The notes beneath the pieces were generated by a model. The model did no database searches. It was not told where the DNA came from and saw nothing but the letters and a program-made list of their open reading frames with translations. This document shows positions 31,740 through 55,900 of a stretch of 64,000 nt of DNA, piece by piece. How positions within the stretch are numbered: position 1 is the first letter of the stretch; each line of letters opens with the position of its first letter. Made by a program: the position numbers and the translations under genes. The DNA comes from Dimorphilus gyrociliatus (lineage: Eukaryota > Animalia > Annelida), in the NCBI GenBank assembly GCA_904063045.1, contig CAJFCJ010000019.1, positions 1,813,700-1,877,699 of the forward strand, in the 5' to 3' direction.

Positions 31740-34530
31740 ATGATTTTTATTATACATCTTCTCCTCTTCAACTATGCCATAGGAGTAGATATTAGAATGC
31801 CTCAGGGTTTGACTTATGAAGAATTTCTAAGGTGCAGAGGTCTGCCATGCGAGGACTTTCAGAAGAAACAAGCCGCAATATCTCAAATAAACAATTTATT
31901 AAAAGTAATATCTTATTTTTAAACAAATATTACACTCTGAAATATATGCTGACACTTTCTTAATATAATAAATAGGATACAAACTATGAGGAAAGATCAA
32001 CTGTCAGGTTCAATTATACTTCAGAAGTTTTAGACGGCTGTGTCAGATTGAACGCAAGGCAAACTCAGAATTTAGTAATTCATTTAAGAGAATTGCAAGA
32101 AAATCAACAAACTAGAAGGAAAAGGCATACAATTAATTTTGATAAATATGGAAATAGAAAATGGCGAGTGACTCGAATTCAGTATAAAATTGAAGAAGAT
32201 TACAGTAAGGAACATTCTTTTCCTTAAATAAAATACAACAAAATTTTTCTCTTAATCATTAAAGATTTGTTCATACTTGTGGTTTATTAGTTTATTGTGA
32301 ATTTTCTTTCCTTTGAAATAGCTCAAGAGTACATTACGAAGCTTGAACAATCCCTGAGACATATTGAAGATAAAACTTGCTTCACTTTTGAACGTGTTGC
32401 CAACGATGGTATCGTCAACGATGACCATATTATATTCTCTAACGAGGAAAAAGCGTAAGTATAACCAGTTTCAATCTCAGGCGGGTTGACTAATTGGCTT
32501 AGAAAAAATATAAATTTTGAATCAGCTCTGCCTTTAGCACGACGTAGCTAAAGACAATCTTTTTCTTTGTGTTATTTAGGTGTTGGGCTTATATTGGTAG
32601 GGTAGCTGCAGGCTCTTATCCTCAACTGATTAACCTACATGAAAGATGTATTGATTTTGTAAGTGCTTGGAGTTTTAATTCAATTACTTTTCATGAATTT
32701 TTTCCTTCTTCCTGCCTGTCTTTTCTTTGTATGAATGAAAATGAATCACTTCCATGTTTATATTTGTCTTTTCTCTTAGTTCGGCATTCCCGTTCACGAA
32801 GTTATTCATTCGTTAGGATTTTGGCATCAACATCAAAGACCGGACAGAGAGAATTATATTAAATTAAACTGCGATCTAATTAACGGTGGATGTGAACACG
32901 ATCAGATGAAGATACCTAATGACGTAAAAGAGCCTAGTATACCTTATGATTACAATTCTGTGATGCATTATTCAGGATTTTCAAATGCTCGGGATAGAAG
33001 TAGGCTGCACGAATTGACAATTAAAGCATTAGATAAAGGACATCAAAAAGCCTTTGGTCAAAGGGTGGAAATGTCCTTTTTAGATGCGAAATTAATTCAT
33101 AACGAATATTGCCAAGCAAAATGCAACAGCAATCCCCCTAATTGTCAAAATGGGGGATTTCCTAATTCGAAAAATTGCGCTAAATGTATATGTGCTGATG
33201 GCTTTGGTGGCAGTCTATGCCAGGATGTCGCTCCTAGTACAACAGGATGTTTTAATAGAGGCGATATTGTATTGGGAATAGGAGAGGAGAGAGTTATAAA
33301 CACTCCAAATTACGGGACCGGCTACAAATCTGGAGACAAGTGCAACTGGAGGATAAGCGCTCCACCTGGTTATCAGGTCAAAATAACATTTGATTCGAAT
33401 TTTCGAATTTATTGCTATAAAGCTCGCGATGATTCTGGATTATATATAAGGGCGTGTCTTTATCATTGGGTTGAAGTAAAGTATGACTACGACTTGTCCA
33501 AAAATGGTTACCGGCTATGTTGCGAAAGTCAACCAAAACCAATAACATCCAAGGGAAGAATTATGGTAGTCGCTTTTCGAAGTTTAGAGGAGAGGCGAGG
33601 CCATTACGTTGGATTTAGAGCTCGTCTTTCTACAGGTAGATTGTTTGTTTATCATGTGAAAGGTTCCCTACTATTTAAAGTATTTTCATAAAATTTAGTT
33701 AGAGCTGACGGTCAGCCTGTCGAACCAACGAAAGAGCCAACAATCGCCCCCACAACTAAAACAACTACAACGACTACTTTGCCTACTACCACAAAACTTC
33801 CCTCAACAACACCTGACAATGGTGTCCGCTGGTCTGAGTGGAGCGATTGCTCATTCAGATCGTGTCAATGTGGTGGCTGCGACTTTCAGTTTCGATTTCA
33901 CATTTGCCGTAATCAGTATGACCAATACGAAGCGTAAGATAATCATACCTCGATTCTCTCTTATTCTTCTCTTTCCTTCTTATTTTAATATCGGTTTATT
34001 TGTAATTTAATTAATTTCGATTTTCTTACTTTAAACAATATCATTCAATTACTAATTTAAATTATCCTGACAGATGCTATGGTGAAAGATTTGGACTAGA
34101 GATGAAGAAATGTAATGATGAAGAGAGAATGTGTGGATCTTCAGACAAATATCCTATTTTTATTGGAAAGCTCTATTATCAGTAAGTAGTAATATATTTA
34201 CAAAAAAACCCCACTAGGGTAAATTTACAGAATGAATTATTTAAATTAACCTTTTATCTATCAAGACAATGCTCAAGATGCTGTGTAGAGTTTAAGGAAG
34301 TGGCGGGCCGTTGCGTGAAAAGACAGAATGTTAATTCTCTGACGCAAATAAATAATAGAACTGACATCCCAGAGGAAGCTAAATTTAATGTTGACAAAGC
34401 AATTCTCGAGTATAATAAGAAGGGCATTAAAGTTACACCAAATAATGCTAAAACTTTAAACTTTCATTCTTTTTCATTGATTTCATCAATTGGTTTTGTA
34501 TTATTAAGCTTTTTGCTAATTAGTAATTAA
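31740..34530 (+). CDS. Astacin metalloprotease: signal-prodomain-astacin-EGF-CUB-Thr-rich linker-TSP1-Cys tail-hydrophobic (GPI-like) C-terminus
   Basis: Signal MIFIIHLLLFNYAIG; furin site RRKR; HEVIHSLGFWHQHQRPDR; Met-turn SVMHY; EGF, CUB, TSP1 WSEWSDCS..CGGC; ends ISSIGFVLLSFLLISN*. Confidence 0.9.
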
Positions 34531-35406: not shown

Positions 35407-38400
35407 ATGGCGAAGAGACCTTCTATTTGGATTGATAAAATACAGATAGAGGTAAGAATTTATCCACGAAAACAAAATAAACTAACATTTCGATTATAAT
35501 TTTTTTCAGAATGTCAGCAATTTCGATAAATTTGAAATAAAATTAAAACACTACTTAAATGAACAACTTCGTGACGGAAACGTACGTTCTTTAAAAAAAG
35601 AAAACGATTATGTAATCGCAACATTTGACAGGAAAATTGGTAATTGTATATGTTTTTCGTATTTATCTTATTGTTTCTAAATAGTATACTATTCTTATAT
35701 AAACGATCTATTCATTATTCAATAGATTATAGTATTCTCTTGACGTCTGTTAGAGCAAATAACGCTCCAGAGGAGATTGTTGTGAGGTCCAGGAAAAATC
35801 TATTTATTCAACCTTACAGAAAAAAATCCGAAGATGAATATTGCAACAGCGATTCAGATATGTCAACAACTTCTACATCAAGTAGTAAAACACGGAAAAA
35901 TTTTAAGAACAAAAACCGTAATTCTCCTAGAAACGAGAATTTGTCAATAGATTTGAGTTTATCACCGCATCGGTTACAGTTAGCAAAACAGTTGCACGCT
36001 GATAAGATAGAAGGTGATAAAATAATAATAAATGGACAAAACGCTTCTACGATGAAGATGGATTTATTGGACGCATTATCAAAAATTGTAAAAATACCAG
36101 CAAATATACCAGATGATTTAGAATTATCAAATGAAGGTTTACACGGATTACTTCGAAAAACCACCGAAATTTCTTATATTGACACTGTTATGATCGACAT
36201 ACACAATAATATAATTGCTTGGAATATGGAAGATGTCAGAAAATTTCAAGATTATATTAAGGAGAATATCACAAGTGAAAAATCAGAAATATCCGTTGAT
36301 CATTGGGAGAATAATGATAAACTTGATGCAAAAATAGCTTATTTAAGAGAAAAGTATAAAGTATGCTTTTCAAAACTTGATAAATTCATCTACGTTCACG
36401 GATTAAATGATTCACCAAAAATTGTAAGAAACGAGTTGGAGGAATATTGGAAACAAAATGCTAAAGTTCAGATAATCTACAAAGTTGAAAACGATTTAAA
36501 TTATACAGTTTTAAAGAGATATTTCAAAGATGATATTGGAGGTATATGTGAAAACTCTCCAATAAAATATGTTGATAATCTTAATGAAATCCAAATCAAT
36601 GGAATCGGTTTGAATGAAAAACAAATAAAAAGTCAATTAAAGCAATTTTCTTCCAACCTAGCTGAAGAGAAACTAGAAAAGAGTTTCTATGGTTTGTACT
36701 TTTACATTAGATCAACAAGAAACAATATATAGTATGTTATAGGTTTGAAAAACTATCTCGGCTCCGAAAAATTCAAAGCAAATTTAACTTTAATTGAAAA
36801 TAATAACTGTTGTGTCATTGATACGGCTTCTGGTAATTCGACTAGGGAGATACCATCAACATCTGACAATAGTGAACACCAATGTGACGATTCGGATGGC
36901 AGTGATAGCGATGAAGATGATAGTGATGATGAAAGTAATACTCCTACCGAAAATCCTAATAGAAAACAAATTGAAATTATTGCCGAAAAAGGAAATATCG
37001 TCAAATATAAGGGAAAGGTAACTATCTTTTTTACCGCCATTCAATAAAATTCATTCGTAATATTCATTTTATTTACTAAGGTTGAATTGTTGATTAATAA
37101 CATTGCAAGTAAAGATAAGAATATTCTTAAGGGTGGGAAACTAAGCGAAACTTTTGTTGCGGAATTCCCTGAATTAAAAGCTGTACCAATGGTTGATCAC
37201 GATGATTATATTGCTTCATCAAAGATTAACGAAATTACAATCTGTCATGCAAATATCACTAAAATAGACAAAAGAGATGCAAAAGCGGTAATTTTCTATT
37301 TTTTTACTAATGAATATTTATAAACGGATTACTAATGAATAGATTATATTTTTAGAGCATTCGTTATTTGGGTAATACTATTAAAAGTATTCTAGAATTT
37401 GCCAATAAAATTGGAGCACAAACAATAGCCCTTCCTCCTATTGGCACTGGGAAAATATGTGGCTTTAGGGAAAGTGTAGTTGGTAATACTATACGTAAGG
37501 CAATAAAATATTATAATCGAAAAAATTCAAACACAACCATCAAGGTTCAGTTTATTTATTCTCTTGTTTTAACAATGGCTATTAACTTCTTTCATTATCA
37601 AACTTTAGAAAGTAATAGTTGTATCGTATAGCGATGATCTCCACCAAAAAATGATGGAAAAGCTTGTAAGGAAAAAAAGAACTTTCAGGTCGAAGACCAA
37701 TATCACAAAAACTTCTTATAATCGACCTACTATAGTATTTAATATAGTTGGTAGGGGAAAGGAATCAACCTCAAATGCAAAATCACAATTACAACTCTAT
37801 TTGTCAAGAATTTGTTATACGGAAACTTTAGAAGAGTTCAAAGAAGTTCAATGGACTGATCTTAAGGAAATTGAAGATAATTATGTGAAAGCAAAGCTAG
37901 ATAGTAATCGTGGTGTTTTAGTTATAAGTGGAATTGAAAACTATGTTGAAAGAGCTTCAATGAAAGCTCAAAAAATCCTCATGAAAGTTAAACAGAAAAT
38001 ATCTAATGAAGCTTCTTCCTGGGATGAAGCAGCGAAGATAAAGGATAAAGATAAACGTTTAAAGGTAAACTTGGCTTAACTTTTTCTTGAGAAAGCAAAA
38101 ATATAAATTTATATTGACTTTTCTTGAAGAGATATGTTGAGCTAAAAGATTGCATACCAAGCAATTGGAAGAATTTTAAAAGTAACTCAGGCATCTCATC
38201 ATTGTTGTCAAGCGATTATTATAAAGTGAATATAGAAAAGGAAGATCCAGCCCACTTTAAGTAAATGCTAGTTTATTTATAAATACAGTTTAAAAGATTA
38301 TTGTTTTCTTCTTCTAGAAATATGAAAGCGTTCGTTGAAAGTTTATGGCAATCAAATTTATACGGCCATGGAAACGATGCTAGATCCAATTCAAAGAGAA

Positions 38401-39056
38401 AAGCTGAGATGAAAATAATGAAAATTCATAGAATTGAAAACAAAAAAGTCTATGAAAAAGTACGATTTTGTTGTTTTTAAATGTTTTCCTGTATTATCAC
38501 AAATTTTTTTAACAAAAAATAGTTCACGGTCCATCGTTCTAGTATTATTCAAGATGCTATTTCTGGACGAATAACGGAATACAAACCAAATCCTGAGATT
38601 CAAACTCGAAAAAGAACGGTAAATGATTTAATTCCGGAAATTAATGAATGTCTCTTGTTTCACGGGGCACAAAAAACAGTCATAGATAAAATAATTAAGG
38701 AAGGTTTTGACTCGAGATGTTCAACCAATAAAGGGTTATATGGAGATGGGTTATATTTTGCTGAGGACCCAACGAAAGCTGATCAATATGTGGGGGATGA
38801 CAGTAAAGGAAACATCCTCTTATGCAGAGTTGTGATGGGGAATGTGTTTACCGCTAAAAAATCAATGAGCAATTCCAAACGTGGTCCTTGTTTGACATGT
38901 CAGCACGAGGGAACTTGCTTGAAACATGAAGGCTTCTATGATAGTGTCGTTGGTTCTGTTAAAGATGGGGGAGTCTCTCTTCTTTTCAGAGAGTTTGTCA
39001 TTTACGAAAGTCATCTAGCCTATCCCGAATATGTTATATCGTATGATAAACCATGA
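35407..39056 (+). CDS. Macrodomain-PARP gene A (PARP14/15-like architecture: RRM/KH-like N-terminus, macro, ART domain with H-Y-E)
   Basis: Macro motifs LINNIA..GGKLS and IALPPIGTGKICG; ART motifs FHG, GDGLYFAEDPTKADQY, FREFVIY..AYPEYVISY; multi-exon. Confidence 0.85.
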
Positions 39057-39223
39057 TATCTTTGTATATTTTAAAATACAATCTTGAAGCGTAAATTATT
39101 GTTCTGTTTTCTATGATTACTATGACTACCATGTATGAATTATATAACCAGCAATGGTTATAATACAATAGCAAATAGATACTATTGAATGTTGGAATTT
39201 TGCTGAGGTTGAAGGACTGTAAA

Positions 39224-42200
39224 ATGATTATAAAATGTTTTAAACCCGAAAGTCCTATTAAAGATCTATCGGAAACTAGTAATAAATCATTGAGCATAAA
39301 AAATAATTATCCAGGTTAGATGCAAATACATAATACAGTATAACGTTAAAAACTGAATTGTCTTAGGTTTAGGCGAATATTTTTGCAGTGATCGAATTGA
39401 AACTGTATTAAAAGGTGTTGCCAACGATTTTAACTGTGAAATAAACGTTAAACTTGATCTGGAAGAATGTAACTGGGAATTAGACATTCTTTTTGCAAGC
39501 TTAAAATCCTCTATACGAAAAGTTTGTATGATATTAATAATTTGCTATATAATTCTATTTATATATTCCATTTCCGCAAAACGAATAGGCCAATGTCATC
39601 ATTGGAATTTTAGACAATGGAACAATAAGTGAATCAATAATAAACTGCTTTCCTAACCGCTTTGAACATGAAATATTTGACTCGGAAGATAATTGTTACT
39701 ATGCTGATAAGACATCAATACATTTCATTGACATAACATCTATCGAAGAATCTTTTTTAAACTCCCATTTTCAAGTCTGTTTATATGCTTAAATAGTAAT
39801 TTTTAAGAGTAAGTATATTCAACATACAGAAATCAATGATAAGGATTCTTGAGAAGGTAAAGATGGAAACGCAGAGAGTTCTATTTCTTATATCTGACTT
39901 TGAAGAAAAATTCGATTGTTTGACACTTGCGAAAAGTTGGAAGAAAATAACGATAGATTTTCGTAGAAAATTTCCAGAGTCTCCATTAAATGTCAGTATG
40001 TTATATTTCTTTGACAAACTACTTATTTGAATTATTTTACATAGATGTTCTACTTTCTGTGCGAAAAGTTAAGTACTTTTGAGACTGTAATGAAAACTCA
40101 GGGATTTGGTATTGAAATTAATTGCAATGTACCTGAAAAAAAGCTTCCTCTTCTCGACAACAAACTAAATTCATTAATAGAAGATAATACTGCGGGCGTC
40201 GTATTTGATTGTAACGAGAGTGAACTTGACAAACTGAAAGAGTTGGAAAATGAATTTATTCGATTCAAGCATAGTTATCATTCTACTGAAAGTATAAAGC
40301 TAGGATATTAATAGTTCTTTTCTTTATTTAGGTCACGAAAAACAAACACAAGCATTTATGGAAACTTCCAAAGTATTACTAATAGGAGTTACTAAGTATG
40401 TTCAAGAAGCTTTAGAAAAATTACAGAATGTGATTGAAGCAGATTTACCAATTAATAAATATAGTTTGAAAAAATACTTTATAGAGTTAAAAGATAAGAA
40501 TCTTTTTGATTTTCTTAAAGATCATTATAAAGATGAATTGGACAGCTTTTTTTATGATACAACATATCAATTTAACGAGAATACTCTACAAATTGAATAT
40601 ATGGGTAGTGAAATTATGAAAAAATCATTCCTTATTCAACTTGAAATATGGAAACAAAACTTGTACGACACTACTTTAAGCTATAGACTTTATAGTTTGT
40701 AGTTTACTATTGATTAGCCAATTTAGGAATTAATTGAATTTTTATCAATAGATCTATTCGGATATTTAGGAAGCGCTGAAGGAAGTCAGCATCTTAAAAA
40801 TGTTGAGACAAAATATGGTTGCCTAATCAAAGTTGATCATTTTAATTATTCAAATAATTTTTCCATTAAAGTCTATAATAAAGATATCACAAGTTTTTAC
40901 CGAAAAGGTTCATCTCTAATATATTTCTTACTTGTTATTTTGTTAATAAACAATGTAATTTTTAAACTTTTAGTGCGATGCTCTAATAAATAATGTGGCC
41001 TTGAAAGAAAAGCCATTAAGGTCATGTGGAAAATTATCAAAAACATTTTGTACAGTTTTTACAGAGTTTCAAGAAAAATATAACAAAGCTGAAGATTATG
41101 ATTTCTTTAGACTGTGCCAAATTTCAAAATGTCTTATATTTAATACAAAAATATATCATCATCGATCGGAGGAGGACTTTAATGTAAATAAATGGCTTAT
41201 ATAATAATTCTTTTCAATATAATTTACATAGTTTTCTCTTTCAATCTACTACAGACTTTTAGACAGACATTTCGGGAAGTTTTTGAATATTGTCACAAAA
41301 AGGGCATAAGATCTATTGGCATACCACCAATAGGCTGTGGAAATTTGGATTATGGATTAGAACGTGTAACAGATATTTTTTATGAAGAAATGATTCAATT
41401 TATGAAAAAGTATCCAAATTCAAGATTAAAGGTTAAAAAATCTTATTTTTGAATTGTTTAAATAGTTGTATTAAAGATTAGTATACTATTATTAGAAATT
41501 CGTATATACATCATTAACGAATCGTCCACGTTTTTTTGAACATTTTCACAATTTGATGGAAAAAGAAACAATGATAAAAATTTCTGCAAAATCTAAAGAA
41601 ACTCTAGATAAGATTGTAGGCGTGCTTAAATCCTTTATAAATGAACTCTACCATGTTGAATATATCTGTCTGAATGAAGAAAGTGATTTAAATTCGTTTG
41701 CTAATTTGGGAAATCTATACGTTAAAGTAACACCTTGGCAAAATGGTAATAAAGTCCTTTATTAAACGTTAACGTATTATATTTAATGGGTTTAAAAAAA
41801 AGGTTCGAATAATTTGAAGATTTTAACGATTGCTGGAATCAAAAATTTCGTTATGCAAGTATCAAAAACAGCAACAGCTATAGTTTATAAAGATGTGCAG
41901 CTGAAAGGAGGAGTGTTGTGGGAACATTTAAAAACTGAAAAAGATGCTAGAAAACGAATAAAGGTAAGTAGTTTCTTCTCCGTAGGTAATCGATATACTC
42001 CTAAAATCTGAAATATATCTCAATAAGCTTCGAATGATGTTAAATGATCATACACCGCCAAATTGGACAATACTTACTGGATCTCTTAATAATATAACAG
42101 GAGACGAATATAAACTAATAGATCTCTCTAATGACAACCCTAATATGTTTAAGTAATGTCTATTCCGTGGCTAATAATTTCTTTATTTTTGAAATTCTCA

Positions 42201-44038
42201 TAATTTCAGCATAATAAAAGACTTTATGAATTCTATTTGGAATGATCCTTCTCCTTTCCAGATAATAAGTTTTACTATAGATGTTACTGCAATTTATCAA
42301 ATTGAAAATCCTCAACTAATTAAATTGTATGGAACAAAGCATAAAAACTATTGCATGAAAATTCTGTCAAATCATCATATTTCGTATATCGAAACAAAAA
42401 GTGACAAATACCTGCCGAACGAATTGAAATCGTTACTAACCAAAGAAATCAATGAGCATTATCTTTTCCATGGTACCGACATTACAGCAGCAAATTCCAT
42501 TTCCGAAAATGGTTTCAATCATAGTATTGCTAAAACTGGTCTGTTAAATACACATATAACTTTCGCTCAAGATCCAAAAAAATCAGATATCTCTACATCC
42601 GATAATGTCAGATATATTTTAATATCCAGAGTAATACTTGGTGATGCTTTTAAAACTGACGAAAGTTTTGAAAGTGTATCAAGCCCACCTTGTAAAGTAT
42701 GCTCAAAAGCACTCTGTACGGTGCACAACGAAATGTACGATAGCATATTTGCTACGCACATGGAGATCGCTCACTCAGACCACATTGTTTATGATAAGGA
42801 TTTATGTTATCCAGAATTTATTATATCATATAAACCAAAAAATGAAAATCAAATTTCATTGAAAGATGCTATAGAAAAACCAATTACTTGGAAGGATTTT
42901 GATGAAGCAGCCGATCCAGAAGAGATCGGTATCAAACAGTTTGTTGATAGAAGTTTTGATTTAACTAAAGAGTTTTTAGAAAATGCTAAAGAAAAACCAA
43001 TTACTTGGAAGGATTTCGATGAAGAAACCGATCCAGAAGAGAGACTTGAGGTAAACAAAATTATCAGGCGAATTTGCTCTTATAAAGTATTAATGTAATA
43101 ATATTTAGATGAGAATTAAACTTTTCAATAATTATCCAAAAAATTGGACAAAATATTCTGGTAAAATAAATTCAAGTAAACCGAAACATAGAATTGATTT
43201 AAAAAAACATGATCTTAATACATACAAGTAGGTCATACAGTTTCATTTTGTGAATTAACTATAATTAACAATTCTTTTCTATTAAAGTCTAATTGAAAAG
43301 TTTATGAAAGATACTTGGAGAGATAATGAGAATGCTATAGCATCTTTAGATGATATAGAAATCTTGGGGATTGAACGGTCAGAGAATCCTAGATTATATC
43401 AACCTTATTCCTTTGAACATAAGAAATTTTGCGAGAGTTTGAGCTCTGATAAATTTCCTATGTTGAGCACCAAAACTAGTAAACATTGTCCAGTTGAATT
43501 GTCATCTCTTCTAGCGCCCGAAATCAATGAATTTTACTTTTTCCATGGAACGGATGCCGCATGTAAAAATAACATTCTAGAACAGGGATTTGGAATCAAT
43601 GAATTTTACTTTTTCCATGGAACGAATTATCCATCTAAACATGAGATTTTCCACCAGGGATTTGATTTTCGACTTGATGGAGTAGGTTACTATGGTATGG
43701 GTGCATATTTTGCTGAAGATCCCAAGAAATCTGATGGTTATACCTTCGGCCGTGGTACGACTATACAAGAGAAATATGATTTAAAAAGACATATCATCAT
43801 AGGAAGAGTAATACTTGGAAATTCAACTGTCGTCTCTCGAGATTTGAACCTCAAACGACCTCCCTGTAAAACCTGCAAGGCAAATGTATGTATGGACCAT
43901 AATGAATATTTCGATTCTGTTCGTGGAAATGAAGGCCTTGAAAATACTTTTTGGGAATACATTGTTTACAGTCTAACACAATGTTATCCCGAATATCTTG
44001 TAACTTACAAGCTGAAACAGAAAGAGAATTCTCCATAG
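39224..44038 (+). CDS. Macrodomain-PARP gene B with two tandem ART domains (degenerate B1, then H-Y-E B2); start uncertain
   Basis: Macro (DALINNV..GKLS; IGIPPIGCGNLDY); B1 42226-42840 has FHG but HITF and SDHIVY; no stop before donor gtaaac 43051; linker exon 43109-; B2 43304-44038 GAYFAEDPKKSDGY, WEYIVY. Confidence 0.75.
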
Positions 44039-45254
44039 ATAGTGAACTATCAAAAAATGGTAATTTATATATATTTTAACAATATGATGGGATGTTTACT
44101 TTATTCAATACTCGTCTTCTTTCTGGAGCTCGTTATTTTGTTTTGATTTCAAGTGAGTCGTGTTTATTTAGTGACGGATGATGTTTATTCGAAAAAAGAA
44201 ACAACAACATTCTGTTACTAAAATTCGTAAAGAAAATCTACAAAAATATTCAACACAAACGTTATGAATTCTAATTAACCCACTAGTATTATTGTTTGTC
44301 TTGGTTTATCGTAAACAGAAGATATTCAAAACCAAATACAAAGCGTTTATTCATTCTTTGTCGAATTTATAGATTTCTTCATCATTGACAAACTCGTATT
44401 CTTACCATTTTTCAACATCCATTTTGAAATTCAGTATGATACCTTCATCGCAATTCTCACCAGCTCAATACGTTCGTTCTTCCAAGCAATATACAAATTC
44501 CACTTATGATAAAGACTACTATTCATCTTTTCAACAACTTCGTTTATAATCTCGTCGCTGTTTAATTTGTCCGCTTCGTTGCCGACAATAAAGAAACTTT
44601 CCACTTTCAACAAGTTCGTCTTTAAATGGAATAGTGAAAGAGTATCGATATATTTAATAGGTTCCATATCTCTTAAAACATTTCTAGAATGCTGAACATA
44701 GCGAGGTTTCGACCCGAATCTTTTTCTCAAGATGTCTAATGCATAAAAATAGCCATCTTCGCCCAAAATATAACAATATTTTATGGAATCGTAAGCCAGA
44801 CCTTTGCAGTGTCTGCATAGATGACGTAACTTTTCGCTGTTAGTCAACCCTTTGTTATCGACATCCAACTTGTGTTTTACCAAAAACTTCTCAACGCGTT
44901 CAGCATCATGACAATCATCGTCAAGTTCGTAGCTATTCTCGTCTTCTAGGTCGTTTCCAATGCCGTTAAACTTTTCAATAGACTCGTTACTGCAGGACGA
45001 ACATTCAGAGCTCTGACTTGACAATTTCTTTTTCGAAGTGGATGGTGAATTCTTCATAATCACCATTATCTTATCAAGTTTATCGCCCAATCCGTCCATT
45101 TTTCTATCCAAGTTGGTATAAACCTCTTCAAGTTTCCTTTCCGCTTGAATTGAATAATCTCTAGCTCGTTTGATAGTATCTTGGCTTACATATGAACATG
45201 CTCCATTGCTTGTAGAATACAACTTGGTGTAATCATTATTATCATCAAAGATCT
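42926..45254. repeat. Segmental duplication copy 1 (PARP 3' exons plus gag), paralogous to 53363-55900
   Basis: Near-identical sequence from tcggtatcaaacag onward, including introns and intergenic DNA; differs by a 72-bp insertion, a ~205-bp deletion and indels after the PARP stop. Confidence 0.95.
44431..45254 (-). pseudogene. Truncated copy of the BEL/Pao-type gag ORF
   Basis: Central ~590 bp identical to 55232-55829; lacks the N-terminal ~100 codons; a ~205-bp frameshifting deletion removes both zinc knuckles. Confidence 0.8.
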
Positions 45255-45994
45255 GTTTATTACTGCTAGAAAATCATCAATTTTGCTGAGAGCTATAATT
45301 TTTATGGCTTTAGAAAATTTGTTTATCAGGCCATTTTTTAAGCCTACGAGAGAGGACAGCGTAGGAATTTTCTAAAAATTCTATTTACTTTTTCTTTTTT
45401 AGCCCTACAAACTTATAGTGAATCATTTAAATCTGCTACAAATGAACCATGTATTTTTGTTTTGTACCTCATTCTGCTTCAATAATTTGATATTAAATGA
45501 TTGTACACTGCGAAACGTCTAAAGAGGACAAAAGCTATAAGTAATATTTTTCCGTACGTAATTAGATTTAGAGTTTTAAACACTTGTTTTGAAAAATTTT
45601 CTATCTAAAGGAAGTTCTAAGTTTAGATATTCATCAGATTTCGTAAGATTTCGACACATGAACGGCCAAAAAAATAGATATAAAAGTTAAAACCAACAAA
45701 TAGATAGCATCAAATGCAAGATAAACGTTCGTCAAAAGAAAAAATTGCTTCTTTAACAAAAACTGTAAGTGATGTATTATAATAAATATTTATGATGTAA
45801 TGAAATAATGTTCTACCACCTAGTTTAATAATTGGAAAAAAGGTAATCTATTTGAATAATAACAGTCTCTTAGCTCACTGTAATCCTTCCTGAAAGAAAT
45901 GCAAATTATTCATAAATAGCTCATTTGTATAATATAGTATATATACTGTAATATATATATATATTACATATATTCTTTATATACTTACTATTTA

Positions 45995-48274
45995 GGAAGA
46001 AATGCGTTATGTACGACACAAATTATTGCGAAAAGAATCAAGAAAATTTTCCAATGGGCTCCTTTGATAGAAGAAAATTCACTCAAAACAAATTAGAAGA
46101 AGGCCTAGTAAGTTTAATAAAAACATTTAGAAATACTGTATGTATTTTTGTATATACTATATTAATTTTTTTTAAAAAAACAAAATAATATTAAAATAGA
46201 ATTATGAAATTGATGATTCTGCCAAAAACGACAAGAAGAAAGTACAGCATGGTGCTGGTGGTAGTAAGTATATAGTTTTCTTTTATACTCTGAATATAAT
46301 GCGTATCGTATGTTTTATTTTATTTAGGAGTTTATAATTTTTTAAGATCAATTAAGGGAAAGATATTCCTAAATGAATTAATGAATGAATATGATTGTCA
46401 AATTAAGGAGAAAACCATTAATTTTAAAAAAACTATTAATATAAATGTAGTAATGGAAAGTATGAGTAAAATGAAAGAAAAGGTAAGAAGGTATTAACTT
46501 TTTAATCTGGATTAGTAATTGGAAAGACATTTCAGTGCGAAGCTTTAATATACTACGAGAAAATGAGTGAATCATTATGTATTCGTTATGAAAATTTTGA
46601 TAAATTTAAGAATGTTAAAAATCCCCAAATACTTCGATTCAATATATCGAAACGACAGAATAAACAGGTAGAAAAATTGATTCAGTATATGAAGGCCTAT
46701 GTAGATTATGAATCATTTTTTGCCAGTGTTTAAATGAAGTTTTAAAAAAGATTTTAAAATGGTGCCATAGTAACAGTATAGAAAGTATTGGAATATCTCA
46801 AATGGGCTGTGAACAATGTTTTGGCCTTAGATCTGATCGACTTGCTCATATATTTTATCAGGAAATCACCAACTTTAATTTCTACGTAAAGAGTACATCA
46901 ATACACGTAAAAATTGATATATGAATATTTCAAATTGATAAATATTTAGCCTATTCCGTTCATTCAGGAAATTTTTATCGTCTGCAATACTGGAGATTAT
47001 GCGAAATACAATAAACTTAGAGAAATTGACAGGAGATGTACAATTTTTACTATTACGGCTAAAAGTCAAGAAAGAGTTGATAATGTAGTAAACGAATTAA
47101 AGCAATTGAGAGAGTCAACTATCATAGAAGAAATGATTATTCCTGAATATTGTGAATTAGATTCACTTGAAGAATTTGAAAATGAGAATACGAGAGTTAA
47201 GATTATGGGATTTAAATCGAAAAGGAAGATCGTTTTGGTAGGAATGGGAGATGAGGCTAAAAAAACTTGGCAGTTATTGACTCTATTCATTCAAAATACT
47301 CTAAAGGATTTAAGATCAAGTTTTACTCATAAAAGCCTAACTTCCGTTTCTAATCTTCAAGATAGATTGAGCGTTTGTGTTATGCTAGCTTAATTATAAT
47401 TATTTCTTAATACTTTCCTTGCTCTATATTTCCTGATTAGATCAGACTGGAATTAAACGAAAGGGTACCGCATAATTGGACAAAGTTTAAAGGAAATCTT
47501 AAAGATATTTTCAGTATAGAACCATACATCGTTGATCTATATGAAAAAGATAAGAGACAATTCGAGTAAGCAACTGTTTTTGAATATAAAATATTAATCA
47601 TATCACAATTAGTTAACTGGTAGTCTTTCTCTTGATCAAACAGCGAAATAAAGAACTTTTTCTTAAAAGCATGGAAATATAGCGATGGATTAAATAGTAA
47701 AATTCATATCTTAAGTATTAAAATGAATGAAAATCCCTGTTTATTTGAAAGGTATGCTTTAAAACATAAACAAATAATCAAAAGTTTAGCCAACAATACT
47801 AGCAAAATAATAAATAGCCATAGCACTGCACTTGATGAATACTTAACTATTGATATGGAATCGCATTTAACTCAAGAATTAAATGAGCATTATCTCTTTC
47901 ATGGAACCTCCGAAATTTCGGCTAAATATATACTTCACCAGGGATTTGATTATAGATTAGCAAATAGGGGAAATTTTGGTAAAGGAATTTATTTTGCTGA
48001 AAATCCAAAAAAATCGCATGCCTTTACTGAATGTTCAGAAAAAAAAACTATGTTAATATCAAGAGTATTATTAGGTAATAGTATATATTTGAAGACAAGT
48101 GAAAGAGATTTAGAGAGACCTCCTTGTGCAGTGTGTAAAGCAAGCTTATGCGAATATCATAATCAAATTTATGATAGTGTCATAGGATTATTTAAAGATA
48201 AAGAGATGGTAATTTATGACCCATTTCAATGTTATCCAGAATATTTACTCACCTATAAGATAGTCTGGATATGA
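45995..48274 (+). CDS. Macrodomain-PARP gene C (divergent macro, ART with H-Y-E); 5' end uncertain
   Basis: Macro C-terminal part SIESIGISQMGC at ~46760-46880; linker exon RVPHNWTKF; ART FHGT, GKGIYFAENPKKS, KEMVIY..CYPEYLLTY. Confidence 0.75.
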
Positions 48275-48859
48275 GTTGAAACGATAAAACAGTAAGAAAC
48301 AAAGTATTTGTCTTTCGAAGATAATCCTAGTCTTTTTAATAAAATATTAGATATTTGTATATATGAAGAGATAACTTTGTTTTATATTTTCTTATTAAAA
48401 CCGTACTTTCTGTTTTTGTTTATCAATGTCTTTTTCTTGAATAAACAATAAGCATAAAGACTAATTATTTTATAATTTCTTTCGTTGAAACAAAATGCAT
48501 GTCATTAGCAAGTATCAAAAATTAAAAGCACGTTGCTAGGTAAAATAACTTCAATCCAGCCCCATAAATTCAATTTTTGCAATAATGAGAGTATAGAGCT
48601 ATGTTTATATTTTTTATTGTTCTATACTTATAGGGATTGACCTACTTTGGTTTTCCCCTATAAAATCTTTTTCAATCAGTCCGAATATCTTGAAAGGTGA
48701 TTTGTGGAATTATAATCAAAAGAGAAAGTACAAAGGAAGATTACATGATCAACAACTTCTTACTTTCAGTTTCATTTTGCTCATATCTAGTTATGCAGTC
48801 GTTAAAAGTTTAGCAAGACAAAATGGATATTATCATAGGAAAATTGTATAAGCCAAATG

Positions 48860-51800
48860 GGAATGTATATGATATAGATATTGAAGAGAAATTTGAACAA
48901 AATGAAAGATATTTTTCAGTAAAAAAGAAACATTATGGTAGGTTATTCATTGTATTCATTGATATTTCTTTTATAGATTTATATATAATATGTTAGGCTT
49001 ATGCGAATTTCTGAAAAGTCATACAATTGCTGAAAATATATTACAAGATATAGCAAACGATTTAAAATGTTGCCTTCGATTGAAATACGAAATTCATCCT
49101 CAAAGAATTGAATTCGAACTATCTCGCAAACGTATGGAAAATTTAATTTCCGAGGTAAGCACTAAGTATACGGTGTCAACAGATTGACATTTAACAACTG
49201 CCTCTGTACCCTAATATGAGTTTGCTTTATTATTTATAACAACAATAATTTAAAGAGTCTTATCATATTGGTCTATTTGAATAGCTTCATATATCCTAAA
49301 TAGATACCTTCCTAAGCTCTCTCCTATTATGTTCATCTACTAGTAATTTCCTTCAAATACGCAAATTCTTCACTTGAAATCTTTGTTTTCATCATAAATA
49401 GAATAAGATAGATTGCTACATAATTTATAACAAATGAAAATTCTATATAAATTTATATTTATGTTTGAAAAATAGGATTAAATTTTTGTCAGGTTGATGC
49501 GCTGATCTGCATTTATGATTGTTACATTCCGAAAAAGATTGATCTTAACTTTCCAACAATTTCAAGAAAAATAAGCACCTCCATAGAACAACAAGTATAT
49601 CAGAACAAAACTATGATATACTTTTTGGATATTAGAAATTTTACACATAGTAAAGGAAAACATCTATTTAAAACCAAACTGTTAGAAATTCTCAAGAAGA
49701 TTGCATTCAAATATACATCAGTACTATTTCCTATTATGAATAGGACTAGTTTTATAAATTATTACAAAATTGCTAATATAATTCAAGAGTGTTTAATAGT
49801 ATTGGAAAAGAACTATCGTAATTTAAAGATCAAGGTAATTACTTTAATATTTTAATGACGATTAATAGCAGTAATCTATAAATAATAGAAACTCATTGTT
49901 TGGTGCGAATCTGCAAAAGTTTACGAACATGTAAAAAGGATTAAGGAAAGAGATGTAGAAATAGAATGTACCGTTTTTCAAACCAAAAATTTACCAATTG
50001 CTAAAGAACGTTTAAACTATTTTATTGAATCGAGTTGTGTTAGCCTTATTTATCAATTCTTCTCTCTCATCGACATTCCACATTTATACTCTTTGAATAA
50101 TGAACTAGTAAGATTAGACTCCTGTAAGATATGATCCCTTTTTATCTGTATTCTGTTATCATTAAGCTATTTACTATGTTTGAATAGATGAGATAATTAA
50201 AAAAGATACAAATCCCAGCTTTCAAGGGTGTCATAGAGTTACTTATGAAATAAAAATCACTGGAATTTCTGGTGCTTCCTTTGCTGTATTAAAGACTCTC
50301 AAAGAAATGATTTATGGAAAATATGTAGCAGCTATAGAAAAAGTAAGCGAAAAATATATTTTCTTTACTTTTTTTTTTAAAAAGAAAGTATATTCTTTCA
50401 TTGTTGAAGGATGAAAAAAATCTATCTTCAAATAAATTCACCGATTTAGGATCTAAAATTCTATTACAAGAACTAGAAGAAGAGGATATAAATATTGTAT
50501 TTACTGTTAAACCAACTGCGGTTTATGTGTTAAAAACAGTTGTTTTACAATCGATTGTAAATAATTTGAAAACATCCAAATGTAAAATTGATATTACTGG
50601 GAATAACGTTACTCTTACTGGCAAAGCTGGCAGTGTTAGATTTATTAGGAATATTATCTTTGATAAAATTAGTAATGCTCATAGCATTCATTTGGATCTG
50701 TTTGAACATCATGAATCGGTTTATAAAGTATTAGAAGCAGCCATTCAAGCAAGCGATTATTCAAAAAACGTTTCGATTGATTTCAATAAGAGTTGTCTTA
50801 TAAGTCTAAGCAAAGAAACTCTTAGAGATTGTTACGATTTCCTGAAAAATTCGATTGAAATAGAACAATACGACTATAATCATAATTTAATCGATCAAAT
50901 TGAAAAGTTTAATAGTCAAAACCATGGCCAAAATCAAGTTGCTGTGACGGTAATTGGTAACAATCGGATAACTGTTACCGGATGTTTCGAGTCGCCATTC
51001 TGGAAATTGTTTAATTCTGCAACCATATCGTCAACCTTAAAGAACAGAAAGACAGATTTTTGTTTCGTAAAAGTATGAAATTCTTTATTATTGTTACTTT
51101 AAACAAATTTTCCCATTTGTAGAGTAAAAAGAAACAAACTAAAGAGATGTGGATTGAAATTAAAAGACTTTTCGAAAAAGCAGTTGCAAATTCGATAAAG
51201 GTTATATCTATAACAGAAATCAGCAAATCAGCATCAGTTTTCCATTTCAACACAAAAATAAGTTCAGGTAAGATGAATTGAATAAAATTCGTTAATGAAG
51301 ACTAATTTTACTTGTTTTGTATATTTTTATAGCCGACATTGAAACGTTAGATTCTATCAATAGTTCTTTGAATGTTGAATTCTATAGGCGAAAGCTAGAT
51401 AATTCTTCAGATACTTATGATAAAAAGAGAATGATATTTCTTTCACTTGTCGAAAATAGTAGACATCTACTAGCCGATACGCAATATCTCGATTATATAA
51501 GGAAAAGTAGCGACTGCGATATAAAATACTTTAACGAAGAGACTAAAGATGAACTATTGCTTATTGGTCAAATTGATACAGTCATTGGAGAAAGAGATGA
51601 AATATCAAGGAAGATTAACTTATATCAAAAATCCGATTTGTCGTTTAAATGTAACGATGAAGACTATAAAAAATTTATTAGAAAGATTTTAGCATCGGAG
51701 GAAAAAGACTGGACCGAGTTTGTAACTGTATTGCCAGGGAATCGTTTGATTGGTTGGGATAAATCCAATAATATCAAGCAACAAAATTCAGCTGAAGAAG

Positions 51801-54436
51801 CTAAAAGCTATTTTGAAGCATGTACAAAAATTGAAGAAATCCCCGATAACGAGGGTGATTTTAATACGATAATGGAATGGAATAAATCACAAAATTTGAA
51901 AGATAAACTCTTCTTTGAAAAATCCAATAGTAAATTTAGAATTTTAGGTTGGAATTCTTCAAAAGGGTGGAAAGATCATGAAAGTATCTTTATCGGTTAT
52001 CGAATTAAACCTTTGTGTTTTCGTATATCGAAGACGTTTTATAAACTTTTAAAGAATAAATTCCAAAACCAAATTAAGCAGTTCTTTAATAATATACAAC
52101 CTTTTTTTGATGACAAAACTTGTGAAATTAAAATTGACTGTTATCAAAAATTAAAGGAACCTTTTGTAAAGCTGTTGAATAAATGGGAAGCAAGTATGAA
52201 GAAACGTGTTTTGTCTCATCATCATTTCGGTTCGAGGACTATTTTTAATTATAAATAGCTTTTAAGATATTTTTTATTATCAATTTTCTAGGTCTATTAA
52301 GTCATTTGCAAACGAAAGAAGGTGAAGAACATGTAAACTCAATAGAAAAGACATGGAATTCTTCTATCAACTTCGAAGTTGATGATGAATCATCAAACTT
52401 GAACATTATATTCGTTGAGAATGAAATTACATCAATGAATGATAAAGTAAGCATTTAATATCATATTCTTAAATTACAATAATGATGTTTTTCTACTAGA
52501 CTATACAGTGTGACGCTCTGGTAAATAATATAGCCGTAATGACCGACGATTTATCACAGGGAGGTTCAATTTCAAAGGCATTTTTGAAAAAATTTCCAAG
52601 AATTGCAACACTGGAAATGAAATCATATCGAAATATAAAAATTACGGAATTAGAGCAATTTAAAATAATACATACAAGAGTGCAACACCATAATGATATC
52701 ACTAAAGAAAAGGTAAGTATCCCTTTTTCCCTAGCCAGATATTTTGTTAATTTAAATAATTTGGTTTTTCTTATCTAAAGGATCTTATCTCGTCTTTGCA
52801 AAATGTACTTTCTTACGCTATTGAAAATAAATTAACCAGTATAGCACTTCCGCCAATAGGATGCGGCTATAGTCAGTATGATCCAAGGATTGTAGCTCAT
52901 TATATGTATCATAGTATAACAGATTTAAAGTATAAGTACACAGATATATCGCTAAAGGTATTTATTAATTATTCTCAATTCTAACAAATTGATATACAAT
53001 ATATATTTCTTCAAATAGAAAGTTTTTATAGTATGCCTGAGTGGAGCTGGTCACGTTTTGACAGAACCATTTAAAGCTATTGAGGAGAGATCAATAAAAG
53101 TATGTATATATGCCGAAAAGGATGAGAATATTGAACGTACAACAAAAGCTATACAATCCTATATTAAAGAGCAAGCAATTGTGAAAAAGATTAATCTAGA
53201 AAAGAACATTAGATTGAATTCTGTGGAGAATTTAGAGAATAAATATGTAAAAATTAAACAGCTAAGAATGAGTATATATAAATACTTGTATACTTTATAG
53301 TATTTTCTATGTTAATTTATATCTATTTTCAGTTAAAACTAATGAACAATTCATGGAAATTGTCGGTATCAAACAGTTTGTTGATAGAAGTTTTGATTTA
53401 ACTAAAGAGCTTTTAGAAAATGCTAAAGAAAAACCAATTACTTGGAAGGATTTCGATGAAGAAACCGATCCAGAAGAGAGACTTGAGGTAAACAAATTTA
53501 TCAGGCGAATTTGCTCTTATAAAGTATTAATGTAATAATATTTAGATGAGAATTAAACTTTTCAATAATTATCCAAAAAATTGGACAAAATATTCTGGTA
53601 AAATAAATTCAAGTAAACCGAAACATAGACTTGATTTAAAAAAACATGATCTTAATACATACAAGTAGGTCATACAGTTTCATTTTGTAAATTAACTATA
53701 ATTAACAATTCTTTTCTATTAAAGTCTAATTGAAAAGTTTATGAAAGATACTTGGAGAGATAATGAGAATGCTGTAGCATCTTCCGATGATATAGAAATC
53801 TTGGGGATTGAACGGTCAGAGAATCCTAGATTATATCAAGCTTATTCCACTGAACATAAGAAATTTTGCGAGAGTTTGAGCTCTGATAAATTTCCTATGT
53901 TGAGCACCAAAACTAGTAAACATTGTCCAGTTGAATTGTCATCTCTTCTAGCGCCCGAAATCAATGAATTTTACTTTTTCCATGGAACGAATTCTGCATC
54001 TAAAGATAAGATTCTCCACCAGGGATTTGATTTTCGACTTGGTGAAGTAGGTTACTATGGTAAGGGTGCATATTTTGCTGAAGATCCCAAGAAATCTGAT
54101 GGTTATACCTTCGGCCGTGGTAAGACTATACAAGAGAAATATGATATAAAAAGACATATCATCATAGGAAGAGTAATACTTGGAAATTCAACTGTCGTCT
54201 CTCGAGATTCGAACCTCAAACGACCTCCCTGTAAAACCTGCAAGGCAAATGTATGTAAGGACCATAATGAATATTTCGATTCTGTTCGTGGAAATGGAGG
54301 CCTTGAAAATATTTTTTGGGAATACATTGTTTACAGTCTAACACAATGTTATCCCGAATATCTTGTAACTTACAAGCTGAAACAGAAAGAGAATTCTTCA
54401 GGCACGAAAATTGAAAGGAAAAATAGTTTACCATAA
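48860..54436 (+). CDS. Macrodomain-PARP gene D (long PARP14-like: degenerate macro, KH-like repeats, macro, ART with H-Y-E); 5' end uncertain
   Basis: Macro CDALVNNIA..GGSIS and IALPPIGCG at ~52500-52950; linker exon YPKNWTKY; ART FHGT, GKGAYFAEDPKKSDGY, WEYIVY. Confidence 0.8.
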
Positions 54437-55900
54437 ATTTATAGTGATCTATCAAGAAGCGGTAGATTCTTTATCAAAAGAGACCTATTATACTTAGGTA
54501 TCTATATGTATTTTAACAATATGATGGGATGTTTACTTTATTCAATACTCGTCTTCTTTCTGGAGCTCGTTATTTTGTTTTGATTTCAAGTGAGTCGTGT
54601 TTATTTAGTGACGGATGATGTTTATTCGAAAAAAGAAACAACAACATTCTGTTACTAAAATTCGTAAAGAAAATCTACAAAAATATTCAACACAAACGTT
54701 ATGAATTCTAATTAACCCACTAGTATTATTGTTTGTCTTGGTTTATCGTAAACAAACAGAAGATATTCAAAACCAAATACAAAGCGTTTATTCATTCTTT
54801 GTCGAATTTATAGATTTCTTCATCATTGACAAACTCGTATTCTTGCCATTTTTCAACATCCATTTTGAAATTCGGTATGATACCTTTATCGCAATTCTCA
54901 CCGGCGTGTCCTTGTTCGTAGCATATATTGCACGTTTGGTGAGTTTGTATGAAATTATTCTGCTTAGTTGGGCTCAATCGTCTAAATTTCGTACAAGTAT
55001 TGATTTCATGCTCCTCGGACATGCAAAATATACAATGAACTTGCGATCGTTCCTTAAGATTCTTCAATTCGTAGTTAAGAAATTCAATTAGAGACTTGAA
55101 AACAACCCGCTCGTTACGTTCGTTCTTCCAAGCAATATACAAATTCCACTTATGATAAAGACTACTATTCATCTTTTCAATCACTTCATTTATAATCTCG
55201 TCGCTGTTTAATTTGTCCGCTTCGTTGCCGGCAATAAAGAAACTTTCCACTTTCAACAAGTTCGTCTTTAAATGGAATAGTGAAAGAGTATCGATATATT
55301 TAATAGGTTCCATATCTCTTAAAACATTTCTAGAATGCTGAACATAGCGAGGTTTCGACCCGAATCTTTTTCTCAAGATGTCTAATGCATAAAAATAGCC
55401 ATCTTCGCCCAAAATATAACAATATTTTATGGAATCGTAAGCCAGACCTTTGCAGTGTCTGCATAGATGACGTAACTTTTCGCTGTTAGTCAACCCTTTG
55501 TTATCGACATCCAACTTGTGTTTTACCAAAAACTTCTCAACGCGTTCAGCATCATGACAATCATCGTCAAGTTCGTAGCTATTCTCGTCTTCTAGGTCGT
55601 TTCCAATGCCGTTAAACTTTTCAATAGACTCGTTACTGCAGGACGAACATTCAGAGCTCTGACTTGACAATTTCTTTTTCGAAGTGGATGGTGAATTCTT
55701 CATAATCACCATTATCTTATCAAGTTTATCGCCCAATCCGTCCATTTTTCTATCCAAGTTGGTATAAACCTCTTCAAGTTTCCTTTCCGCTTGAATTGAA
55801 TAATCTCTAGCTCGTTTGATAGTATCTTGACTAACATATGAACATGCTCCATTGCTTGTAGAATACAACTTGGTATAATCAATATTATCATCGAAGATCT
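53363..55900. repeat. Segmental duplication copy 2, paralogous to 42926-45254
   Basis: Direct sequence comparison. Confidence 0.95.

Follow-up and report, generated by a model that had tools for sequence, protein, structure and literature searches.

To our knowledge, the textbook rule for macro-PARPs, the proteins that join macrodomains to a PARP catalytic domain, is that they are mono-ADP-ribosyltransferases lacking the catalytic glutamate. An evolutionary survey found nearly every clade 3 PARP to be without this residue (PMC2964712), and another reported that tandem duplications of PARP14-like genes are frequent (PMC4245714). Molluscs and annelids were looked for in both of these broad PARP surveys and no mention of them was found, nor was any found of Lottia or Capitella in the second. 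A 2023 study recorded macro-PARPs of spiralian animals, analysing their macrodomains only (PMC10221186), and the literature searched gave no description of macro-PARPs with a His-Tyr-Glu (H-Y-E) catalytic triad. Here we describe an array of four such genes, called A to D, in the annelid Dimorphilus gyrociliatus. The array lies in a stretch of 64 kilobases (kb) of contig CAJFCJ010000019.1, which we call the window and to which all positions refer. We put at about 0.7 the probability that these are four tandem paralogous macrodomain-PARP genes of a spiralian family, which combines a scaffold of PARP14 type with a different catalytic subfamily, and that they are likely to encode glutamate-dependent enzymes.

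The window is AT-rich (about 30% G+C), with many genes and short introns. The four annotated genes, DgyrCDS11737-11740 in the order A, B, C, D, occupy positions 35407-54436 on the + strand, the limits being the ATG of gene A (35407) and the stop codon of gene D (54434-54436). A profile of the five catalytic-domain open reading frames (ORFs; alignment A1) was searched against 1.84 billion representative proteins, and four of the five best matches map back onto the window by tblastn as exactly these genes. The rebuilt exon chains translate without a difference to the four database proteins, all of which bear only the name 'Poly [ADP-ribose] polymerase', and 39 of 39 introns are GT-AG, most of them 51-92 nucleotides long. 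Each of the five catalytic domains passes the gathering cut-off of Pfam PARP (PF00644; 32.9-66.6 bits, cut-off 26.7), and a six-frame hidden Markov model (HMM) scan of the whole window returned exactly five catalytic-domain ORFs and four macrodomain exons. The four genes and five PARP catalytic domains first read from the letters are thereby borne out. That macrodomain and catalytic domain belong to the same genes, as had also been proposed, agrees with the annotation and with collinear homology to single proteins of Lingula and molluscs. As an example, gene A is collinear with Lingula P0016 over the KH8-like region, the LPxxW motif and the catalytic core (E 8e-35), and gene D is collinear with a single Lingula protein across the macrodomain.

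The exon plan is common to the four genes: introns have the same positions and phases at the two macrodomain exons, the P.NW exon and the W-motif segment, which is what tandem duplication would produce. In this respect the original prediction, which had listed a W-motif exon, a P.NW linker exon and a catalytic exon, was right about the sharing but not about the plan. The order is P.NW, W motif, catalytic core; the W motif forms an exon of its own only in A and in C as annotated, and B1, B2 and D have it within the catalytic exon; and there is no linker exon. In alignment, the crystallised catalytic domain of PARP15 starts with LPxxW. Read in this way, the P.NW and W-motif exons make up the catalytic domain's N-terminal part, being neither a linker nor a WWE domain, and Pfam found no WWE (PF02825) in the proteins of A, B, C and D. 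The Pfam scan of these proteins also found no CCCH fingers and, at E up to 0.01, no Ank or SAM domain. Gene A runs from an N-terminal region without recognised domains through an acidic linker, a macrodomain and a KH8-like region to the catalytic domain (Pfam PARP 7.9e-19, with Macro and KH_PARP14_8 below threshold). Gene D has a long N-terminal region, a macrodomain, a KH-like region and a catalytic domain, and gene C has a short N-terminus.

Domains A, B2, C and D have the motifs FHG, G-x-Y-F-A-E and E-x-V-I-Y or E-Y-I-V-Y, as originally stated, and thus keep the signature of the NAD site intact; B1 is a degenerate H-T-D that has also lost the Gly-x-Gly before the Tyr position. In a HMMER alignment to solved structures, F-W-E-Y-I-V-Y of D falls on Y-A-E-Y-V-I-Y of tankyrase-1 and F-R-E-F-V-I-Y of A on L-A-E-Y-V-I-Y of tankyrase-2, and the column of the triad Glu is that of the Ile in the H-Y-I triad of PARP12. 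The string E-Y-I-V-Y is also the established PARP1 motif around Glu988 (PMC6486540). An AlphaFold2 model of the D catalytic domain, built from a 40-sequence alignment, has a predicted local distance difference test (pLDDT) score of 88.9, and Foldseek places TNKS2 first (E 6e-15, template modelling (TM) score 0.77) and TNKS1 second, the two at E about 1e-14, TM scores of about 0.75 and 24-25% identity, with PARP12 next. Judged by these alignments, A, B2, C and D carry a true H-Y-E triad at the positions of PARP1 residues 862, 896 and 988. The proposal of a tankyrase/PARP1-type triad would have been undone by a structural alignment placing the glutamate outside the E988 position; this objection does not apply, because the residue aligns with the catalytic Glu of tankyrase and PARP1, and tankyrase is also the best structural match. 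The position of PARP1 Lys903 (seven residues after the triad Tyr; Lys in tankyrase and Tyr in PARP12) is Lys in all of A, B1, B2, C and D, and at the Tyr986 position A, B2 and D have Phe and C has Asp.

All five catalytic domains also contain a loop of the form C-x2-C-x4/5-C-x2-H (Cys3-His) between the RVxLG and FDSV strands, and even the degenerate B1 keeps its four Cys and His positions. The loop is modelled with high confidence and sits elsewhere than the tankyrase zinc site, and the stretch of D that aligns with that site has no Cys or His ligands. We take the Cys3-His loop to be a family-specific candidate for a zinc-loop element of the PARP fold, in which the four residues would bind zinc.

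The macrodomains point in another direction, to PARP14. The best matches of the family macrodomain profile are PARP14 macro2 (128 bits) and macro3 (110 bits), followed by the macrodomains of PARP15 and PARP9 and by macroH2A. For the D macrodomain (AlphaFold2 model, pLDDT 83) the best Foldseek matches are macroH2A1.1, PARP15 macro2 and PARP14 macro2/3, and by its modelled fold it is of the ADP-ribose-binding, non-hydrolytic kind. Every Dimorphilus array gene has one macrodomain and some mollusc relatives have two or three, and relatives in Lingula and bivalves carry the Pfam domains RRM_PARP14_3, KH_PARP14_2 and KH_PARP14_8. The scaffold can be called homologous to PARP14 because its macrodomains are macro2/3-like and its relatives have RRM and KH domains of PARP14 type. 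The original prediction had seen a simple parallel to the vertebrate PARP9/14/15 cluster; this has to be given up in favour of a homologous scaffold on which only the catalytic domain is of another subfamily.

For that catalytic domain, the family profile was compared with the sequences of the PDB, where it scores 104 bits with TNKS2, 102 with PARP12, 99 with TNKS1, 92 with PARP15, 77 with PARP14 and 58 with PARP1. As a control, a WWE-bearing PARP14-like protein of Littorina (H-Y-M, with Tyr at the Lys903 position) scores 161 bits with PARP15, 146 with PARP14, 125 with PARP10 and 45 with tankyrase. Since the control scores PARP15 and PARP14 so far above tankyrase, two catalytic subfamilies coexist, and at least one mollusc has both. 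On these sequence scores the array belongs to a subfamily distinct from PARP14/15 and about equally close to tankyrase and PARP12. It is possible to explain this by shuffling, that is, by a catalytic domain from a tankyrase-like gene having been placed on a PARP14-like scaffold, instead of an old clade 3 domain having retained its glutamate. Tankyrases are after all the best matches in both sequence and structure, the same catalytic type occurs without macrodomains in dinoflagellates and, with ankyrin repeats and a kinase domain, in the protein P0107, and a mollusc separately keeps a WWE-bearing catalytic domain of PARP14/15 type. However, the score of PARP12 is about equal to that of tankyrase (102 versus 104 bits), there is no zinc site at the tankyrase position, and the domain begins with LPxxW, as the PARP15 crystal constructs do. 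We regard such shuffling as somewhat unlikely.

The array is not a local oddity. On sequence evidence the H-Y-E macro-PARPs are a large spiralian family, uncharacterised so far, and this family is real and widespread, its genes being already present in public databases under generic names. The 150 nearest representative protein clusters contain 188 catalytic domains, 159 of them H-Y-E. Among these 159, 154 have Lys at the Lys903 position, 121 have Phe or Tyr at that of Tyr986 and 95 have Met at that of Met890, and in 92 the loop has three aligned cysteines, often followed by His. Domains of H-Y-V and H-Y-M type were recovered as well, and these have Tyr at the Lys903 position, like the human mono-ADP-ribosyltransferases; as far as the aligned residues tell, the Glu and the Lys go together across the family. 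One to three macrodomains are present in 61 of the 150 proteins, and 58 of the 61 are H-Y-E. Members occur in bivalves (Magallana gigas, as 'Poly [ADP-ribose] polymerase 14', K1PDC3; Saccostrea, Pecten, Ylistrum, Pinctada, Sinanodonta, Mya and Argopecten), in gastropods (Aplysia, Biomphalaria and Bulinus), in the brachiopod Lingula and in a further annelid, Owenia, which also has tandem pairs of family genes. The oyster members are labelled 'PARP14' or 'PARP14-like' in the databases. A word-index protein search returned only P0001 and P0002 for the D catalytic region, 19 short proteins for the catalytic-domain alignment A2, and 15 proteins, the named ones all molluscan, for an oyster member with two macrodomains; neither tankyrases nor vertebrate PARPs were among the matches of these three queries.

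The catalytic type has some outlying occurrences. Dinoflagellates (Symbiodinium, Effrenium and Biecheleria; clusters P0113, P0131 and P0055) have the H-Y-E type with Lys and without macrodomains, often as two copies per protein, an odd distribution beside spiralian animals. P0107 has the same catalytic type together with ankyrin repeats and a kinase domain, and no macrodomain. The metagenomic protein P0003 consists of five tandem catalytic domains of H-Y-V type and P0006 (Ptychodera flava) of three, with nothing else recognisable in either. Dimorphilus itself has a second locus on contig CAJFCJ010000005.1 (L002), where P0007 (1-216) is a PARP-only paralogue with H-Y-E and Phe at the Lys903 position; 10 kb away, at 10001-11280 of L002, lies a 1548-residue macro/PARP gene that is not among the nearest H-Y-E matches.

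How the array proteins may work can be outlined from these parts. In the scaffold, a KH8-like module would accompany one to three non-hydrolytic macrodomains of the macro2/3 or macroH2A type, and conservative relatives add PARP14-type RRM and KH domains. On this scaffold A, C, D and perhaps B2 would act as glutamate-dependent ADP-ribosyltransferases, and the macrodomain would dock on ADP-ribose carried by the enzyme itself or by its targets, linking writing to reading. The products are more likely to be mono- or short oligo-ADP-ribose than long polymers, and the setting would probably be stress or innate-immune signalling, as for the vertebrate macro-PARPs.

Several observations weigh against this picture. 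An H-Y-E triad is necessary but not sufficient for chain formation, as PARP3 and PARP4 have it and yet make mono-ADP-ribose, the donor and acceptor loops also mattering (PMC6486540), and the PARP1 Met890 position is Leu in A, Tyr in B2 and D, and Asn in C. B2 contains a 24-residue duplication in its core for binding nicotinamide adenine dinucleotide (NAD), and its partner B1 is degenerate. The Dimorphilus macrodomains are divergent, those of A and B being below the Pfam threshold although backed by the family HMM, and in that of C the diphosphate loop is without its second Gly. The match to KH_PARP14_8 in A (E 1.6e-4 to 1.3e-3) is likewise below threshold, and an RRM of PARP14 type is not detectable in A or D (hhalign probability below 1%). 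The proposed immune role, lastly, rests on analogy and gene neighbourhood.

A stronger claim would be that these are true poly(ADP-ribose) polymerases, in which the Glu, the Lys and the aromatic residue allow elongation and the macrodomain reads the polymer, making a self-reinforcing reader-writer. In its favour, the Glu is at the PARP1 Glu988 and tankyrase position within E-Y-I-V-Y, the family has the Lys in 154/159 domains, the aromatic in 121/159 and the Met in 95/159, and tankyrase is the nearest structure. However, macrodomains of the PARP14 macro2/3 type are readers of mono-ADP-ribose, and the array copies have Leu, Tyr or Asn in place of the Met. The shape of the loops matters as well, PARP3 and PARP4 being H-Y-E enzymes that make mono-ADP-ribose (PMC6486540), and we consider the polymerase explanation unlikely.

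An IQ-TREE tree of 73 rows, for which the Shimodaira-Hasegawa-like approximate likelihood ratio test (SH-aLRT) is the only support and a long-branched Littorina sequence the display root, gives a support of 98 to the H-Y-E clade and of 91 to a 43-row clade within it, in which every named member is a spiralian. Nested in this is a Dimorphilus-only clade (97) of B1, B2, C and D together with P0007, which is not linked to the array, and gene A groups with P0008, near Owenia and Lingula. From this placement, A is the copy that has stayed conservative, and B, C and D arose by local expansion. The idea of a lineage-expanded class therefore holds for the Dimorphilus-specific clade of B1, C, D and B2, but not for H-Y-E macro-PARPs as such, which are widespread in molluscs, a brachiopod and annelids. 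FastTree placed P0003 inside the Dimorphilus neighbourhood and IQ-TREE outside the H-Y-E clade; we follow IQ-TREE.

C and D are 43-50% identical. A recent event connects D and B: a blastn comparison of the window with itself finds a segmental duplication of about 97% identity. Copied were the PITW exon of D with the 250-nucleotide intron and the catalytic exon after it, and beyond these the 3' flank and a portion of a gag-like ORF. This ORF is longer on the D side (504 residues versus a truncated copy), which suggests D as the source of the copy and B as its target. In frame, the B1 exon continues into the copied PITW segment, from which a splice leads to B2, giving the annotated protein with two catalytic domains. 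As read from the sequence, a recent segmental copy of the last two exons of D thus created gene B in its present form. It is worth noting that B2 also has an internal repeat of 72 nucleotides, by which the His strand and the next helix are duplicated (24 residues). Its first 30 nucleotides are identical in the two copies and the rest has diverged, so that it is not a simple fresh tandem duplication. The repeat was also considered as an intron, but by eye there is no GT in the 30 identical nucleotides and hence no canonical in-frame intron by which one copy could be spliced out.

Between the catalytic exons of B2 and D there are 18 nonsynonymous and 0 purely synonymous codon differences (Nei-Gojobori proportions of nonsynonymous changes, pN, 0.037 and of synonymous changes, pS, 0.011). 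The co-duplicated gag piece has 9 nonsynonymous versus 8 synonymous differences (pN 0.014, pS 0.053), and the contrast between the two is nominally significant, at a Fisher p of 0.001-0.02 depending on how codons are counted, with few changes in all. In such small numbers, the substitution pattern suggests either diversifying selection or relaxed constraint. Relaxed constraint would suit the explanation that the array is largely decaying, with several copies being non-functional duplicates in a young cluster of fast turnover that are open by chance. B1 without its Tyr, Glu and Gly-x-Gly, the duplication in the core of B2, the degenerate macrodomain and short N-terminus of C, and the transposon fragments within the array all fit this. 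On the other hand, the annotated frames of all four genes, each of 9 to 13 exons, are open and have canonical splice sites. A, B2, C and D have lost nothing of the triad, the Lys or the Cys3-His loop, although C and D are only 43-50% identical, B1 keeps all four loop positions, and 0 synonymous versus 18 nonsynonymous changes exceed what relaxation alone would give (p about 0.01). General decay is very unlikely to be the explanation. Also very unlikely is the idea that these enzymes act mainly on nucleic acids and not on proteins, with RNA or DNA ends as targets to which the Cys3-His loop and the KH-like modules would bring the catalytic domain. KH-type modules adjoin the catalytic domain, a conserved loop resembling a zinc knuckle lies within it, and modification of RNA or DNA ends in vitro is known for several PARPs, but no feature of the sequence is specific for such an activity and the loop may be purely structural.

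We thus keep to the reading of the array as a set of glutamate-dependent macro-PARPs, for which an immune or stress role may be proposed by analogy. Kinship with PARP14, PARP12 and ZAP, the tandem expansion, the B2/D substitution pattern, the neighbouring NACHT gene and an oyster 'PARP14' response all point this way, each of them a weak signal. In the oyster, genes annotated as PARP14, of a type not specified, are among the antiviral response genes (PMC12803857); the other oyster antiviral transcriptome papers examined for PARPs gave no mention of them.

The coordinates of the array, and of the genes and elements around it, are collected in the table. In gene A the annotated intron of 253 nucleotides is four times the usual length and excises a strand and a helix from the C-terminal end of the macrodomain; an alternative GT-AG intron of 64 nucleotides is in frame, gives a protein of 1024 residues and restores a D-like C-terminal strand. 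Two further features were considered and dropped. Extra 5' exons of gene B resembling the N-terminus of D were a visual impression for which BLASTP gave no alignment, and a macrodomain remnant in the 734-nucleotide intron of D (49469-49852) had no match to Pfam or the family HMM. The two gag-like ORFs have no Pfam match and probably belong to an unclassified retroelement. Some 6 kb downstream of the array, an intron-less frame of at least 1231 residues runs to the window end and encodes a NACHT domain (Pfam 1.8e-12), followed by a region that to the eye resembles leucine-rich repeats and has no Pfam match; the gene is NLR-like. Between it and the array are two ORFs paralogous to each other (32% identity, E 6e-32), neither with a Pfam match. 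Upstream, one neighbour encodes a protein with three von Willebrand A domains and two others are metalloprotease genes of astacin type; a CUB domain is found by Pfam in the downstream one only, the Pfam astacin match is below threshold, and an EGF-like and thrombospondin-like tail is seen by eye. Further upstream, some ORFs resemble by eye those of a DEAD-box helicase, a Son-of-sevenless-like exchange factor, a polynucleotide phosphorylase and a G-protein-coupled receptor.

Table. Positions of the array genes, their domains and neighbouring elements within the 64-kb window
Feature	Position	Strand	Evidence or remark
Gene A (DgyrCDS11737, P0005), 961 residues as annotated	35407-39056 (coding chain to 39053)	+	Exact exon chain
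Gene A macrodomain exons	37081-37287; 37356-37494 as annotated, probably to 37544, resuming 37609	+	Weak Pfam Macro; macro HMM
Gene A, annotated 253-nucleotide intron	37495-37747
Gene A, alternative 64-nucleotide intron	37545-37608		GT-AG
Gene A catalytic domain	38130-39053 (P.NW 38130-38260; W motif 38318-38459; catalytic 38523-39053)	+	
Gene A triad	His 38661-63, Tyr 38754-56, Glu 38991-93	+	H-Y-E
Gene B (DgyrCDS11738, P0001), 1090 residues; macrodomain, catalytic domains B1 and B2	39863-44038 (coding chain to 44035)	+	Exact exon chain; two Pfam PARP stretches
Gene B macrodomain exons	40974-41183, 41255-41431	+	Pfam Macro 2.4e-4; macro HMM 1e-16; CDALINN motif
B1 catalytic domain	42028-42840 (P.NW exon 42028-42152, then from 42210)	+	Pfam PARP 5.7e-8
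B1 triad	His 42469-71, Thr 42559-61, Asp 42778-80	+	Degenerate H-T-D
B2 catalytic domain	42926-44035 (PITW segment to 43050; exon 43301-44035)	+	H-Y-E
B2 internal 72-nucleotide repeat	43523-43594 and 43595-43666
B2 triad	His 43616-18, Tyr 43706-08, Glu 43955-57	+	
Gene C (DgyrCDS11739, P0004), 573 residues	46009-48274 (coding chain to 48271)	+	Exact exon chain
Gene C macrodomain exons, degenerate	46536-46667, 46727-46885	+	Macro HMM
Gene C catalytic domain	P.NW exon 47441-47565; 47644-48271	+	Pfam PARP above threshold
Gene C triad	His 47900-02, Tyr 47990-92, Glu 48203-05	+	H-Y-E
Gene D (DgyrCDS11740, P0002), 1173 residues	48823-54436 (coding chain to 54433)	+	Exact exon chain; Pfam Macro 1.1e-11, PARP 3.3e-13
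Gene D macrodomain exons	52500-52712, 52781-52957, start of 53019-53271	+	Pfam, AlphaFold2, Foldseek
Gene D catalytic domain	53333-54433 (PITW exon 53333-53487; exon 53738-54433)	+	
Gene D triad	His 53981-83, Tyr 54071-73, Glu 54320-22	+	H-Y-E
Cys3-His loops	A 38889-38927; B1 42691-42726; B2 43865-43900; C 48125-48160; D 54230-54265	+	
Segmental duplication	42926-45273 versus 53363-55919		About 97% identity, window self-blastn
Truncated gag-like copy downstream of B	44431-45273	-	
Gag-like ORF downstream of D	54795-56306	-	Two CCHC knuckles, 504 residues stop to stop
Paralogous ORFs between array and NACHT gene	56761-57444 and 58204-58851	-	
NACHT gene	60306-63998	+	
Upstream neighbours (von Willebrand A protein, astacin-type genes)	25102-28921 (-) and 32780-33934 (+)

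The rule that macro-PARPs are mono-ADP-ribosylating was built on vertebrates and on surveys in which no mention was found of the molluscs and annelids sought. The family is a natural test of what, beyond the Glu, sets mono- versus poly-ADP-ribosylation, and it offers a candidate for a new zinc-loop element in the PARP fold. Invertebrate genes automatically labelled 'PARP14-like' cannot be assumed to be PARP14-like in action. The Dimorphilus genes, being small and having short introns, are convenient to clone. A bolder conjecture is that the spiralian macro-PARP family really makes poly(ADP-ribose), with a built-in zinc-bound loop, and that the Dimorphilus array is a fast-diversifying immune branch of it. 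This is distinctly unlikely as a whole; if spiralian macro-PARPs did polymerise, the macrodomain-plus-PARP design would at its origin, or repeatedly since, have coupled a reader to a writer of polymers, and vertebrate PARP14/15, with their mono-ADP-ribosylation, would show only one of its outcomes.

Three known systems come closest to the array. With PARP14 (clade 3, together with PARP15 and PARP9) it shares a macrodomain N-terminal to a C-terminal catalytic domain, a KH8-like module between the two that is below the Pfam threshold in the Dimorphilus proteins, relatives with PARP14-type RRM and KH domains, and the tendency of PARP14-like genes to be tandemly duplicated (PMC4245714). It differs from PARP14 in having H-Y-E instead of H-Y-L and Lys instead of Tyr at the Lys903 position, in lacking a WWE domain and a macro1-type hydrolase domain, in having one macrodomain and not three, and in its additional Cys3-His loop. 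The array catalytic domains score only 25-34 bits against PARP14/15, whereas the WWE-type protein of Littorina reaches 146-161. In the tankyrases (TNKS1 and TNKS2; clade 4), the best sequence and structure match of the catalytic domain, the common features are H-Y-E, the donor motif G-x-G-x-Y-F-A-E...K-S...Y and the strand E-Y-V-I-Y...YPEYL. Unlike tankyrases, the array has no ankyrin clusters, no SAM domain and no tankyrase zinc site, its Cys3-His loop lies further along, and the identity is 24-25%. PARP12 and ZAP (CCCH zinc-finger PARPs, clade 3E) are close through the profile score of PARP12 (102 bits), which is also the best single match for gene A, but PARP12 has H-Y-I, Tyr at the Lys903 position, and N-terminal CCCH fingers and WWE domains, none of which were found in the array.

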